The notes under the pieces were generated by a model. The model did no database searches. It was given only the letters and a program-made list of their open reading frames with translations, and had not been told where the DNA came from. Below are positions 2,119 through 58,202 of a stretch of DNA of 64,000 nt, in pieces; the stretch's first letter is position 1; each line of letters opens with the position of its first letter. The stretch is from the NCBI RefSeq assembly GCF_006345805.1, contig NC_043011.1, positions 63,748,464 to 63,812,463 on the forward strand, written 5' to 3'. This DNA comes from Octopus sinensis (lineage: Eukaryota). A program made the position numbers and the translations under genes.

Positions 2119-2218
2119 CTGCAGAAGTTCACATCTGGTGCATATAGAGGATACCTTTTAATGGAATGTGGGCACCGGATGCTAGCTTTGTCAAAACAAA
2201 TGTGTAGCGTTGTAACAC
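2119..2218 (-). CDS. Paralog P1 exon 2: (G)VTTLHICFDKASIRCPHSIKRYPLYAPDVNFC(R/S)
   Basis: Acceptor tttgtag|GT and donor AG|gtatat. Exactly 100 nt, phase 1 to 2, with Cys spacing C-x7-C-x16-C identical to P2-P4. Embedded in track ORF 1932..2252. Confidence 0.85.
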
Positions 2219-2476
2219 CTACAAATTTCACATTTTCTTTTGAGTTATTCAATAGTGATACACTACTGAAATAATTTTCCGTACATTACCTAAATTTAAA
2301 ACATTTAAAACGTACCTAATTGTGCATTGTTAATGAGACACGATACGTAAATGATGAATATTATTTTGCAAATAAAAATTTCCGTATAAGCAAAAAGAAG
2401 TAAGAATGGATGAAATAAATACTTAAGACACAATGTATTTATAGTTTTTGCTATAGTAGGGTGGGCTAAACATTTC

Positions 2477-3292
2477 ATAGGCTGCTCAAGATACTTTCAT
2501 GGAATGCGACTAAATAGGATTTTGTTTTCGCAATATAGTCCACCTTGCAGTCCAAACTTTTGTTCGAGAGTTGTTGCAGCGTTTATATCGCATTGGTGAA
2601 AAGGATTTTATCATGTTGTGAAAAACCTTGTCAACAGCAGATGTGACGTCACCGTCACTGCTTTGCGCGCTCCCAGATAACGATACTTTTTCATGTTGGC
2701 GAATAAATGATAGGTCAAATGGAGCCAAATCAGTAGAATAGGGTGGAAGATCAACAATTTCAAAATCTGTTCCGGACATCAACCATGGAAATCAAGGAAG
2801 TTTGTGTTGGAGCCATGTCCTCATGAAAGAAAACATCTTTCGTCCGCTTTCTTGGCGATTGGATTTGATAGCGTTTTGTAGCTTCTTCAGCTTGTTGACA
2901 TTGTATTTCCGTTTATGTCAATAAACACAACACCTGTTGCATCCCTAAAATCTACGGCCGTTACCTTCCCTGTAGATGAGATCAGCTTGATTATTTTTGG
3001 AGCAGATGACTAGGGATGCTTCGACTACATGGATTATCTCTTTGTCTCTGGCTTTAACTGATGAACGCAGTACTAAGCGTGGATTGAGCCTGGTGCGCTT
3101 TTGATCACGTTAGCAGAAGACTAAATTCAGCTCCCCAATGTTGATAAAGTCGAAGCGTCATCCCCTTCTATAACAACCAAGTCTGTATGAATTAAAGCCA
3201 TTCTCTGCGGGTACCTGATACCAAATTTTCGTTAATTTTGAAAGGAAATCGGTACCAGTTACGTTGGAACTATTCTTTGAGCAGTCAGATAT
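2477..3292 (-). mobile_element. Decayed mariner transposon
   Basis: ORF 2510..2782 has LPPYSTDLAPFD, the mariner YSPDLAP motif. Upstream VFFHEDMAP resembles the second catalytic Asp region. Short inverted ends ggctgctcaag / ttgagcagtc. Confidence 0.8.
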
Positions 3293-3833
3293 AAGTTTAC
3301 CTGGACGGAAACAATACAGATATTAACGTAGAGTGTTGAAATTAATACAAGCTGGGAATTAGAGTTCTAGCATCAGTCTCCTAGTCATCCTATGAAATTT
3401 ACAATCCACATTCCTAATTCCTTCAATAACACATAGTAAGATAATCGAAATATTAATTCAACTAATCTTTAAAGACATTAAGATTTATGTCTACGTATAA
3501 CTTGTAACAGGTGACGAGAACTGATCTGCTGCTGAAGACGTTGTAATACGGAAAATTTGTACAAAGTCATTTCTTTCAATTTAATGATTTAATGGAACAA
3601 TGTTATTGTTTGAGATTGTCAACATTTCTCATGTGGAGAGTGATTTGTTCTTTCAAAGTGTGTAAGGCACAAAATAGAAATTTAGCACTCTTTGTTGATG
3701 TCATATATATATATACATACATACATATATATATATATATATATATATATATATATATATATATATATATATATATATATATGTGTGTGTGTGTATGTGT
3801 GTGTGTGTGTGTGTGTGTGTATATATATATATA

Positions 3834-3998
3834 GGCGCAGGAGTGGCTGTGTGGTAAGTAGCTTGCTAACCAAGCACATGGTTCCGGGTTCAGTCCCACT
3901 GCGTGGCATCTTGTGCAAGTGTCTTCTGCTATAGCCCCGGACCGACCAATACCTTGTGAGTGGATTTGTTAGAGGGAAACTGAAAGAAGCCTGTCGTA
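3834..3998 (+). mobile_element. tRNA-derived SINE, family 1 (head)
   Basis: ggcgcaggagtggctgtgtggtaag (A box) ... ccgggttcagtccc (B box). The same element recurs at 7178-7560, 9185-9357, 14320-14700, 28444-28812, 37915-38220 and 61862-62345. Confidence 0.8.
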
Positions 3999-4069
3999 TA
4001 TATGTATATATATATATATATATATATATATATATATATATATATATATATATATATATATATATATAT

Positions 4070-55155: not shown

Positions 55156-56991
55156 CTGAAAATAAAAATGTGCCTACGATATTATACTAGAAAAATGGAT
55201 GTCAATATTTGGCGATTTATTTTTTTTCAATCTCATGTGAATAATCTTTTATTATTCCTAAATAATTCCTAACTTTAGAGACTGATGCAAATGAAGCGAA
55301 ACATGAAATTGATATTTTTTCTATCTCGACAAGGAACTGGATTTACATTTCTGATGATCAACCCGAATCTTTAGAGTTTTGGGAGATAAACCTTGGAAAG
55401 TTTTCCTTTGCACCGCTATGCACATTACATTCGTTATACCACTTTGCATTCTATTAATGCAATGCTTGTATTACATAAATTCATATCCTCAACAACATTA
55501 GAATATATTAGAGTACTTTGTATAGTAGAAAATACGGTATAATGATATTGCACACAAATGAAGCTACCTTAACACTTTGAGCTCTGACCTCCTGAACATT
55601 ATTTGACCATATACCTGGCACTCAACTGGTACTCTACCGGTAGAACGGTACTACGGCATAGAGAAAAATAAGCCATCCAATGGTAAACCGGTGTTACGGG
55701 ATCAAAGGGTTAAGATAACCACTTAAAACACCAACTGTTACTAATTTCAGGTTATTCTTCCTCACAGTCACAGATCCCTTTTATACATTGTGATTCTCTT
55801 CAAGTAACACATTCTACGTGAAGCTCAACAGCAGTTATGTGCAACCTAGTTCACGTTTTAATTCTCGGTGTTTAAAAGGCACAGAATAATGTCTTGTTCC
55901 TTTACCGGTTCGTTAAGGGTTTCATATTATTAAGAGTTTATAATAAGCAACTGGTAGTAAATACATTCTTTACTGAGGTCTATGGGCAAAAGCCAACCTG
56001 CTTTCTTAGAACATCCATCCTTAGGTAGCTTTGAATGAAAAGAGAAAAGCAGGTCGAAACCCCAGTTTCACAAATTCATCTTAAGCCTATAAATCTAGTA
56101 TGTTGTGAATACACATCACTTGAAAACAAGTGTTCTCCGAAATGAAATATGGCAGCGGTTAGTATAGTCACGTTCAGATCTGCATTAACGTGTTAAAAAT
56201 AAATAGGCACGCCATTTCATTGTTTCGATTGGGGCCGTTCTCTGTGCATATTATTACTTATATTACAACTGAAATAGATTGAAGTAAATGCCTCATCCCA
56301 AACCAAGAACAAATCCTATAAGAATACGGGCCTCGGTATGAGTACAGAATATATCGACATATATTGCTTTCGCCTTTTTCAAGCCAAGCCCTAGCCAGGC
56401 TCATGGGCCCGGTTTCCCGGTTTCTGTGGCGTATGTGTTTCCCCCAACTGGACAGGACGCCAGTCCATCGCAGCGTTAGGGAGAGTGAGGGGAAGTTGTG
56501 GCGAAAGATTACAGCAGGGGTCACCACCACCCGCTGCCTCGTGGAGCTTTAGGTGTTTTCTCTCAATAAACACACACGACGCCCGGTCTGGGTATCGAAA
56601 ACGCGATCCTCCGACCGCTGGGCCATTGCGCCTCTACATATCGACATATACGTAACAAAATACTTCAGTAATAACAAATATGAAGTCTTATTACACAGGA
56701 TACTGTTCTTATTATATAACAAACCCCAAACTAAACAGTACCGACGTGTCAGTGATTTGGGCAACCGTAGCTTAAATAACATTAAGGATAGATATTTATG
56801 ATAATGTTTTCTAACATTGATAGATAAAGAGGTTTAGTCGATTATATCGACCTGAAGTGCTCATTTCTTACTCATTTAATCGACACTGGAAGCGATGGAA
56901 ATGCAAAGTTGCTAAACATTTTTCAGAACGCGGCTTTAAATAGAAATGCTAATAATACAAATATGAATGAAGAATCTAAAGTTATGCTTAC

Positions 56992-57091
56992 ATGCACGTG
57001 TGGAGCTTTGTATTACGATCAAGGGGACCTTTCGGGTCTGTCAGGCACATCTGTTTAGCTTTCAGGGTACACTTGTGTGACAAAGCAGCAC
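56992..57091 (-). CDS. Paralog P4 exon 2: (G)AALSHKCTLKAKQMCLTDPKGPLDRNTKLHTC(M)
   Basis: Acceptor catttcgcctgaag|GT and donor AT|gtaagc. 100 nt, phase 1 to 2, C-x7-C-x16-C; KAKxMC shared with P3. Confidence 0.88.
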
Positions 57092-57123
57092 CTTCAGGCG
57101 AAATGTAAAATAGCTCAATTAAG

Positions 57124-57293
57124 AAATAATAATGATAATGATAATGATAATAATAATAATAATAATAATAATAATAATAATAATAATAATAATAATAATA
57201 ATAATAATAATAATAATAATAATAATAATAATAATAATAATAATAATAATAATAATAATAATAATAATAATAATAATAATAATAATAATAATA
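57124..57293. repeat. (AAT)n microsatellite in P4 intron 1
   Basis: Direct reading. Confidence 0.95.
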
Positions 57294-58165
57294 GCAAAAA
57301 GCAAAACAATAACATCAACGATATTCCTTTCTAGTATAGAGACAAGGTCTTACATTTTGCTAACGGTTCTACCGGTTCACCGCATTAGTAGTCATGCGAA
57401 TAATAATAAATTGTTATACGTAAAATGTGGATACTTCCGTGTATGAACATATTTGCTATTAATGTATACACACGCAGACACATAAACACAAACGCAGACA
57501 CACATATACACACAGTGTTTTTTTTTCATTTTGGAGGGACACCTACAAAACCTTTAGAGTCAGTCCGGTTAATTTTTTTTCCATTCAATAAATGATCTAC
57601 ATTAGCTTTTAATTTGTAAACAATACAACAGACAGAATAATCAACAATTTAAAACATTTTACGACATCATAAAATTAACCATTCAACATGAACTGGTATA
57701 TAATCCTATACGAGGCGAAATGTGGCCTGATTCGTACATGAAATTATTAGAACGTCAAGTAACATTTAAGATTATCTAAAATATAGATTTACATTTTACG
57801 TATTTCGTAAGTGCACAGTTTAACATTAAAAGGACAAACATCCCATTATCTGCATATATATGCATATGATGAGATTATTAACATATTGATTCAACAACGT
57901 GCGACTTAAACATATGTATATATGTATAACATCGTTTTACACACACACACACACACACACACACACACACACACACACAACACACACACACACACACACA
58001 CACACACACACATATAAATATATATATATATATATATATATATATATATATGTGTGTGTGTGTGTGTGTGTCAAGTCGTTTTGGTATGCTGTTAATAAGG
58101 CAGAAAGAAATGATTTGTTATTTGTTCACGTCGAAACGGAAATAATTTTGTGTATGTTAACTTAC

Positions 58166-58202
58166 CGACCAGAAGGAGACAGAGAAATACCACGAATTTC
58201 AT
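58166..58202 (-). CDS. Paralog P4 exon 1: signal peptide MKFVVFLCLLLV(G)
   Basis: ATG AAA TTC GTG GTA TTT CTC TGT CTC CTT CTG GTC G|gtaagt. 37 nt, phase 1, with TATA and Inr-like motifs just upstream. Confidence 0.88.

Follow-up and report, generated by a model that had tools for sequence, protein, structure and literature searches.

GFR-alpha and GAS1 are glycosylphosphatidylinositol (GPI)-anchored, all-helical and disulfide-rich co-receptors for cystine-knot ligands, and the GDNF/GAS1 domain (PF02351) holds about 10 Cys in 80-100 residues. The Ly6/uPAR proteins, such as CD59 and Lynx1, form tandem, fast-evolving families, are often receptor modulators, and adopt a beta-stranded three-finger structure with 8-10 Cys. 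The N-terminal domain of the RGM proteins (RGMA, RGMB/DRAGON, as well as RGMC/hemojuvelin; for example PDB 4UHZ) folds into a bundle of three helices held by three disulfides and binds BMP2 and GDF5, the BMP/GDF contact being made by the alpha2-alpha3 linker together with helix alpha3, and the RGMs are GPI-anchored (PMC7354924). Here we analyzed a 64,000-nucleotide stretch of Octopus sinensis chromosome CM016873.1 (the window, 35.6% G+C), in which four genes, named P1 to P4, encode a small six-cysteine domain, all on one strand with their coding starts spaced 13.3, 14.4 and 23.6 kb apart. Our favored reading, to which we give a probability of roughly 0.6, is that they are four tandem paralogs (one cut by the window edge) from a family of GPI-anchored, RGM-N-like surface proteins that has expanded in Octopus.

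An earlier reading of the window, made from the letters alone (the sequence-only reading), had described the four genes as unrecognized small secreted peptides, each built from a signal exon and two domain exons. However, exon 3 ends in phase 1, and the reading frame must therefore go on past it. When the four spliced sequences were used as a profile query, two proteins came back, P0001, which is the 115-aa 'uncharacterized protein' LOC118766390 of O. sinensis in RefSeq, and P0002, the 102-aa LOC106870881 of O. bimaculoides. P0001 is the product of P3, whose gene lies near 63.79 Mb. It starts with MSIFSTKQDSIK followed by MKTIFLLLALFVIG..., and at its C-terminus 27 residues, GNSTDSLHGIMKSHIIILMVSIISALV, extend beyond the earlier version of P3 and are encoded by a fourth exon, only 443 nt past exon 3. 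The spliced four-exon coding sequence (CDS) of P3 is 312 nt long and corresponds to residues 13-115 of P0001. Because the RefSeq CDS starts at an in-frame ATG at 44905, 36 nt upstream of the second ATG, the '40-nt exon' of P3 is the coding part counted from the second ATG only. We have high confidence in the resulting architecture of P3, a product of 103-115 residues made of a signal peptide, one domain and a tail, with no further Pfam domains. The tail consists of an NST sequon, several small residues as possible attachment sites, a short polar spacer and a 13-residue hydrophobic end with nothing beyond it. Small residues, a polar spacer and a terminal hydrophobic stretch are the standard layout of a GPI-attachment signal, and 13 hydrophobic residues would not suffice for a transmembrane helix followed by a cytoplasmic tail. 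Judged by inspection, which is how all GPI-signal and signal-peptide assignments were made here, the P3 tail is most likely a GPI-attachment signal. The description as small secreted peptides is not supported at this point, since exon 3 splices to a GPI-attachment-type tail exon in P3 and, by prediction, in P2, and about half of the family has such a tail. The case illustrates that three exons read as a full 'secreted peptide' can hide the exon that decides the destination of the protein. Read-through of exon 3 into the intron was considered and ruled out, as the GT donors are kept in all three copies and the read-through peptides are unrelated.

The exons themselves proved sound. All 11 peptide pieces quoted in the sequence-only reading translate on the minus strand at the positions claimed, the exons have polypyrimidine-AG acceptors and GT donors (GTAAGT, GTATGT, GTAAAT, GTGTGT, GTTTGT), and the exon lengths (counted, like the positions in Table 1, with the bases of split codons) and phases are as described, 37 nt (P1, P4) or 40 nt (P2, P3), then 100, then 89, with phases 1, 2 and 1. 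The spacing C-x7-C-x16-C-x8-C-x7-C-x11-C, said to be invariant, stands in P2-P4, while P1 shows the first three Cys. We built a family hidden Markov model (HMM) on 44 domains, of which 41 were taken from loci elsewhere and P1 supplied none, searched it against 2721 six-frame fragments of the window and obtained exactly four exon-2 and three exon-3 matches, with nothing further better than E = 0.04. P1 exon 2 was recovered at E = 1.5e-7 by this model, which does not contain P1, and therefore the exon set is real and beyond chance, in agreement with the earlier claim of a tandem cephalopod family. Neither the family HMM nor a direct search matched a P1 exon 3 within window positions 1-2118, and the remainder of P1 therefore probably lies past the window start.

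The typical product would carry a cleavable signal peptide, a ~60-residue three-helix/three-disulfide domain, an N-glycosylation sequon and a C-terminal GPI-attachment signal. Such a protein would enter the endoplasmic reticulum, where the signal peptide would be removed and the six Cys would pair, and GPI transamidase would swap the last ~20-25 residues for a GPI anchor, so that the plasma membrane would carry a glycosylated helical module of ~60-70 residues on its outer face; signal-peptide cleavage, GPI anchoring and disulfide formation are steps that we infer. The module would most likely be a distant relative of the RGM N-terminal domain and, by analogy with RGM, could act as a surface ligand-binding or co-receptor unit whose binding surface would diverge quickly between paralogs and species. 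Our confidence in a ligand-binding function, which rests on this analogy, is low.

A HMMER scan of 1.84 billion representative proteins (E <= 1e-3; P2 was not in the query alignment) returned 26 representative clusters at 50% identity. We looked up 20 of these matches, and every one is an Octopus protein (O. bimaculoides, O. sinensis or O. vulgaris) labeled 'uncharacterized' or 'hypothetical', except that P0011 (A0A0L8GPX5) bears the automatic UniRef label 'GDNF/GAS1 domain-containing protein'. Large clusters are suggested by accession runs, which in O. bimaculoides extend from LOC128249786 to LOC128249887 on a single chromosome and in O. vulgaris from CAI9735826 to CAI9735841. The chromosome of the window also holds an O. 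sinensis paralog with two domains, at 63.04 Mb and ~0.7 Mb off the window. This is a real, lineage-expanded, uncharacterized Octopus gene family. With at least 26 clusters at 50% identity in three Octopus species, clustered on several chromosomes and without a domain assignment, it is a large one among the many lineage-restricted families of unknown role in cephalopod genomes. The term 'unrecognized' does not suit the family or P3, as relatives are annotated in the three species and P3 is in RefSeq, but it is fair for P1, P2 and P4 because these are not among the annotated proteins in the searches run. A word-indexed protein search gave no match with P2 alone or with the 44-domain alignment, exact-sequence look-ups returned the genome record only (for P0002, no contig), and nothing relevant was found in the literature searched for these LOC identifiers or for cephalopod orphan cysteine-rich families.

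Members of the family have 1-9 tandem domains. The six Cys do not vary across the 44 non-redundant domains, and one Pro and one Arg hardly do, with the consensus C-x7-C-x6-YP-x3-PD-x2-YC-x-RL-x5-C-x7-C-x3-F-x7-C. About half of the members have a tail of ~27-32 residues (up to 66), in which small residues are followed by 11-14 hydrophobic ones at the C-terminus; the others stop soon after the last Cys, and P0003, with 8-9 domains, ends in EL. The two-domain paralog uses one exon pair per domain (103+89 nt, phases 1-2-1), and such a pair for each domain (100/103 + 89 nt), symmetric with phase 1 at either end, means that relatives could gain 2-9 tandem domains. The sequence-only reading had set itself against the alternative of one domain of a larger multi-exon protein, and that alternative turned out to be partly true, the domain standing in 2-9 tandem copies in relatives.

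The resemblance to the RGM N-terminal domain emerges from profile comparisons. P2 matched Pfam RGM_N (PF06535) at 15.7 bits (E = 0.018), under the gathering score of 24.2, and P3 and P4 gave no match to it. When the 44 domains were searched singly, 23 matched RGM_N (best E = 2e-4), whereas other Pfam families matched at most one domain each, and the four-domain P0005 scored 37.9 bits, above the gathering score, summed over four partial matches. The top hits of the family profile in the PDB were RGMB N-domain chains (E = 0.022), aligned over D-x2-[YF]-C-x2-L-x2-Y-x2-C-x7-C, and hhalign against the RGMA/RGMB N-domains gave P = 3.3e-4. An HMM of RGMA/B reached 8 bits or more in 41% of the real domains and in 1.2% of shuffles with the Cys fixed, and this loss of score implies that the RGM signal is more than cysteine spacing or composition. 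AlphaFold2, run with a 43-sequence alignment without P2, predicted helices at 8-15, 18-22, 29-43 and 48-62 with a mean predicted local distance difference test score (pLDDT) of 80.7, and the topology did not change, at pLDDT 70, when the alignment was shallower. If helices 8-15 and 18-22 are read as one first helical arm, the model has three main helices, which, together with the invariant Cys, bears out the earlier proposal of a helical, three-disulfide mature part at the level of prediction. The octopus domain is thus like the RGM N-domain in having three helices (predicted here) and six Cys, it has the same central C-x8-C-x7-C as RGMB, within the motif D-x2-[YF]-C-x2-L-x2-Y-x2-C that is common to both, and RGM likewise has an N-terminal signal peptide and a GPI anchor, the octopus anchor being putative and confined to about half of the family. 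As a lead only, the conserved Phe four residues past Cys5 aligns with RGMB Leu103, counted from the aligned Cys (PMC7354924).

Several observations weigh against the RGM-N-like, GPI-anchored reading. Every single-domain RGM_N score is under the gathering cut-off, the hhalign probability is only 38% over 32 columns, and the similarity to RGM is limited to ~25-32 central residues. Foldseek searches of the PDB with both models gave no match at E <= 0.001 and retrieved no RGM N-domains. The outer loops differ, C-x4-C-x22 and x21 in RGMB versus C-x7-C-x16 and x11 in octopus. One member bears the GDNF/GAS1 label, P1, P2 and P4 are missing among the annotated proteins, the P2 tail is weakly hydrophobic, and the closest P4-like paralogs have no hydrophobic tail (the last two points are detailed below). 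Finally, the octopus proteins are made of nothing but this domain, single or in 2-9 copies, and lack the remaining RGM architecture: the context of the RGD/RGN loop, the vWD-like partial domain at the C-terminus, the GDPH site of autocleavage and the part that binds neogenin. The octopus proteins are therefore not RGM orthologs and would be at most a stand-alone RGM-N-like module.

Some of these points suit a different explanation, in which the domain is an orphan lineage-specific helical Cys scaffold, its likeness to RGM_N is convergent or spurious, the tail is a GPI signal or not, and some copies (P2, perhaps P4 and P1) are unexpressed or decaying. The sub-threshold single-domain scores and the empty Foldseek result are in its favor, as are the Octopus origin of all 20 matches looked up, the status of P3 as the only window gene found as an annotated protein, and the state of P2, with its degenerate tail, weak GTTTGT donor and 8.3-kb intron holding a decayed long interspersed nuclear element (LINE). 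We nevertheless regard it as unlikely, since the 23 independent matches fall on one Pfam family with none recurring elsewhere, the RGM signal is lost in the Cys-fixed shuffles, predicted helix and disulfide number, central Cys spacing and the putative mode of membrane attachment all agree with RGM, and the exons of P1, P2 and P4 all retain open frames and consensus splice sites. We favor homology to RGM_N over convergence with moderate confidence. The description as GPI-anchored, stand-alone RGM-N-like proteins, the symmetric exon-pair module and the Octopus restriction among the matches checked appear to be new, and they turn a set of 'uncharacterized protein' entries into a hypothesis open to testing, that of modules which bind ligands at the cell surface or serve as co-receptors there, possibly with ligands of the BMP/GDF type.

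The UniRef label on P0011 raises another possibility, a reduced helical domain of the GDNF-receptor/GAS1 type in GPI-anchored GFR-alpha/GAS1-like co-receptors. The mode of anchoring, the all-helical structure and the wealth of disulfides of GFR-alpha and GAS1 would fit such a relationship, but the octopus domain has six Cys in ~60 residues, far from the cysteine content of the GDNF/GAS1 domain given above. Moreover, Pfam GDNF was not matched by any of the 44 domains (E <= 10) or by any of 10 full-length members, P0011 included (E <= 1), and the PDB search with the family profile (E <= 10) contained no GFR-alpha, GFRAL or GAS1 chain. We consider this origin very unlikely. With the Ly6/uPAR proteins the family has only the design in common, a signal peptide, a small disulfide-locked domain and a putative GPI signal in tandem, fast-evolving genes, as the octopus domain is predicted to be all-helical with 6 Cys and has no UPAR_LY6 match in Pfam. 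The loose likeness to DUF19 (PF01579), the extracellular domain with conserved cysteines of T20D4.11-like nematode proteins, suggested in the sequence-only reading was not borne out, since none of the 44 domains matches this family in Pfam at E <= 10, the Pfam scans of the window proteins and of the full-length members gave no such match either, and the recurring match is RGM_N.

P2 and P3 are colinear duplicates over >9 kb, and their alignable non-coding DNA is 67-73% identical. At the nucleotide level, exon 1 is 92.5% identical between them, the 5' flank plus exon 1 82.6% (288 nt) and the mature domain 61-62%, in line with the conserved signal exon and fast-diverging mature part that had been claimed; at the protein level the signal is 88%, the mature domain 41% and the tail 43% identical. 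Between P3 and its O. bimaculoides homolog, the protein identities are 82% for the signal, 57% for the mature domain and 82% for the tail. Both presumed targeting signals thus outconserve the domain that would be displayed between species, which fits a functional anchor signal and a fast-changing surface. The ratio of nonsynonymous to synonymous substitution rates (dN/dS) of the mature part is ~0.47 between P2 and P3.

These comparisons also bear on the proposal of small secreted three-disulfide peptides, venom, antimicrobial or pheromone-like, from a secretory tissue. Its proponents could point to the signal peptide followed by a compact six-Cys domain, to mature exons that diverge fast and are no better conserved than introns between P2 and P3, and to P0007, P0029 and P0003, which lack a hydrophobic C-terminus and with whose kind P4 groups. 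However, the annotated P3 product and exon 4 of P2 end in a GPI-type tail, as does about half of the family, and between species the tail is more conserved than the domain from which it would be cleaved. The mature-part dN/dS is not >1, there are no dibasic processing sites, and Pfam shows no similarity to any toxin or antimicrobial-peptide family, so that the venom, antimicrobial-peptide or pheromone role once suggested finds no backing. As an account of the cluster this proposal is improbable, and it survives only for tail-less members.

Within the GPI-anchored, RGM-N-like reading, a bolder scenario can be drawn, although we would give it little probability: octopuses may have detached from RGM the head that binds BMP/GDF and multiplied it into a large, chromosomally clustered, fast-diverging repertoire of GPI-anchored single-domain and secreted multi-domain surface modules, which would tune TGF-beta-superfamily (or other) signaling or mediate cell/self recognition, with skin, suckers or the nervous system as conceivable sites. 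If true, octopuses would have a co-receptor or decoy system specific to their lineage, without a counterpart described in other animals.

The predicted exon 4 of P2 encodes ANSTASISIAGIMKPQIIFTVPLIYTLK before the stop codon and matches the tail HMM at E = 2e-18, and with it the spliced P2 CDS is 315 nt long and in frame. The P2 tail, IIFTVPLIYTLK, is weakly hydrophobic and ends in Lys. Given this and its divergence from the P3 tail, P2 may have lost anchoring or may be a decaying gene. A tiny last exon (VR-stop), with a 3' untranslated region (UTR), had been considered for P2 and P3 in a ~530-bp block (Table 1) and was dropped, as the RefSeq protein reveals the true exon 4. In either gene the block lies downstream of the stop codon, at a distance of ~3 kb, and it is 88-90% identical between the two paralogs, which exceeds the surrounding duplicated DNA. 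Apart from its short interspersed nuclear element (SINE) part, it has no other copy in the window and none in two paralog loci, L002 and L003. Gene conversion may have produced this tract, or it may be a 3' element, regulatory or part of the UTR, that has been conserved. At the other end of the genes, P3 and P2 have in common an in-frame ATG 12 codons before the ATG of the signal peptide (MSIFSTKQDSIK-MKT...); the start is at MK in P4, in P1 and in the model of the O. bimaculoides homolog, versus the upstream ATG in RefSeq P3.

For P4, no exon 4 was found by hydrophobic-tail scans, the tail HMM, motifs modeled on P0007 and P0029, or BLAST with the last exons of paralogs. Exon 3 of P4 has 71% nucleotide identity with exon 3 of the O. 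vulgaris paralog P0007, and this paralog and P0029, the closest P4-like ones, end in 5-8 polar residues (VADYN and GVLYTP, respectively) without a hydrophobic tail. The P4-like subfamily may therefore be secreted, and P4 may be among the tail-less, secreted members. Two weak candidates for its last exon on the minus strand of 45000-55066, with the acceptors at 54944 within a SINE (VLNSNSTEDDF...CVLVSI-stop) and at 51788 (...NNLSMPLLTAPNAPTIVGTKSVVAVVVVVVVTLVS-stop, with a microsatellite-derived tail), are not convincing. In two P4-like paralogs, the final coding exon (L002 17156-17200 and L003 25105-25160) has only 5-7 residues, and the GTAAGT-type donor that follows ~20 nt past the stop codon hints that the 3' UTR of this subfamily continues in additional exons.

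Table 1. Exons of the four six-cysteine genes and other features of the window (a slash marks a splice junction)
Feature	Position	Strand	Description
P4 coding exon 1	58166-58202	minus	37 nt, signal peptide MKFVVFLCLLLV-G, phase 1 end, ATG start, donor G/GTAAGT
P4 exon 2	56992-57091	minus	100 nt, phase 1 to 2, Cys1-Cys3, HMM E = 2e-7 (P4 is part of the HMM)
P4 exon 3	55067-55155	minus	89 nt, phase 2 to 1, Cys4-Cys6
P3 coding exon 1 (from second ATG)	44830-44869	minus	40 nt, signal peptide
P3 exon 2	42595-42694	minus	100 nt, same residues as P0001
P3 exon 3	40872-40960	minus	89 nt, splice sites and P0001 residues
P3 exon 4	40346-40428	minus	G/NSTDSLHGIMKSHIIILMVSIISALV-stop, N-glycosylation sequon and GPI-attachment-type tail
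P2 coding exon 1	30416-30455	minus	40 nt, signal peptide, upstream in-frame ATG as in P3
P2 exon 2	26427-26526	minus	100 nt, donor CA/GTTTGT
P2 exon 3	18071-18159	minus	89 nt, splice sites and reading frame
P2 exon 4 (predicted)	16831-16916	minus	A/NSTASISIAGIMKPQIIFTVPLIYTLK-stop, homologous to P3 exon 4, acceptor cttaacgtag/
P1 coding exon 1	6849-6885	minus	37 nt, signal peptide MKCFIVISAFIV-G
P1 exon 2	2119-2218	minus	100 nt, HMM without P1 gives E = 1.5e-7
Upstream in-frame ATG segment, P3	44870-44905	minus	12 codons
Upstream in-frame ATG segment, P2	30456-30491	minus	12 codons
~530-bp block, P3	36948-37457	minus	
~530-bp block, P2	13508-14038	minus	
Decayed non-LTR retrotransposon	20111-21572	plus	in P2 intron 2; Pfam RVT_1, E = 1e-16
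Second retroelement fragment	33654-34578	plus	between P3 and P2; Pfam zf-RVT, E = 5e-5, under the gathering score
SINE-like repeat copies	50720-50900, 51515-51640, 36918-37049, 13400-13610, 30154-30397, 35237-35391, 39243-39459, 31767-31890, 54853-54996, 61648-61703		~150-250 bp, many copies
Very long microsatellites	31690-32286, 8440-8893, 46130-46670, elsewhere		(ATA)n, (TA)n, (TATG)n-type

The remaining features of the window are mostly repeats. The retrotransposon in P2 intron 2, without long terminal repeats (LTR), is decayed, its reverse-transcriptase open reading frame (ORF) being in at least three pieces, and the insert partly accounts for the length of this intron, 8.3 kb versus 1.6 kb in P3. 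ARAGORN found no tRNA genes over the window. The SINE-like repeat, which reads GGELAE...FKF in one frame, is the source of nearly everything that the P4 region has in common with the P2/P3 regions at the nucleotide level outside the exons, and in masked tblastx comparisons of the paralog regions, P4 versus P2/P3 downstream of exon 3 showed only similarity derived from it. Spurious ORFs of 130-200 codons arise on both strands from the very long microsatellites, which also flood translated searches run without masking.

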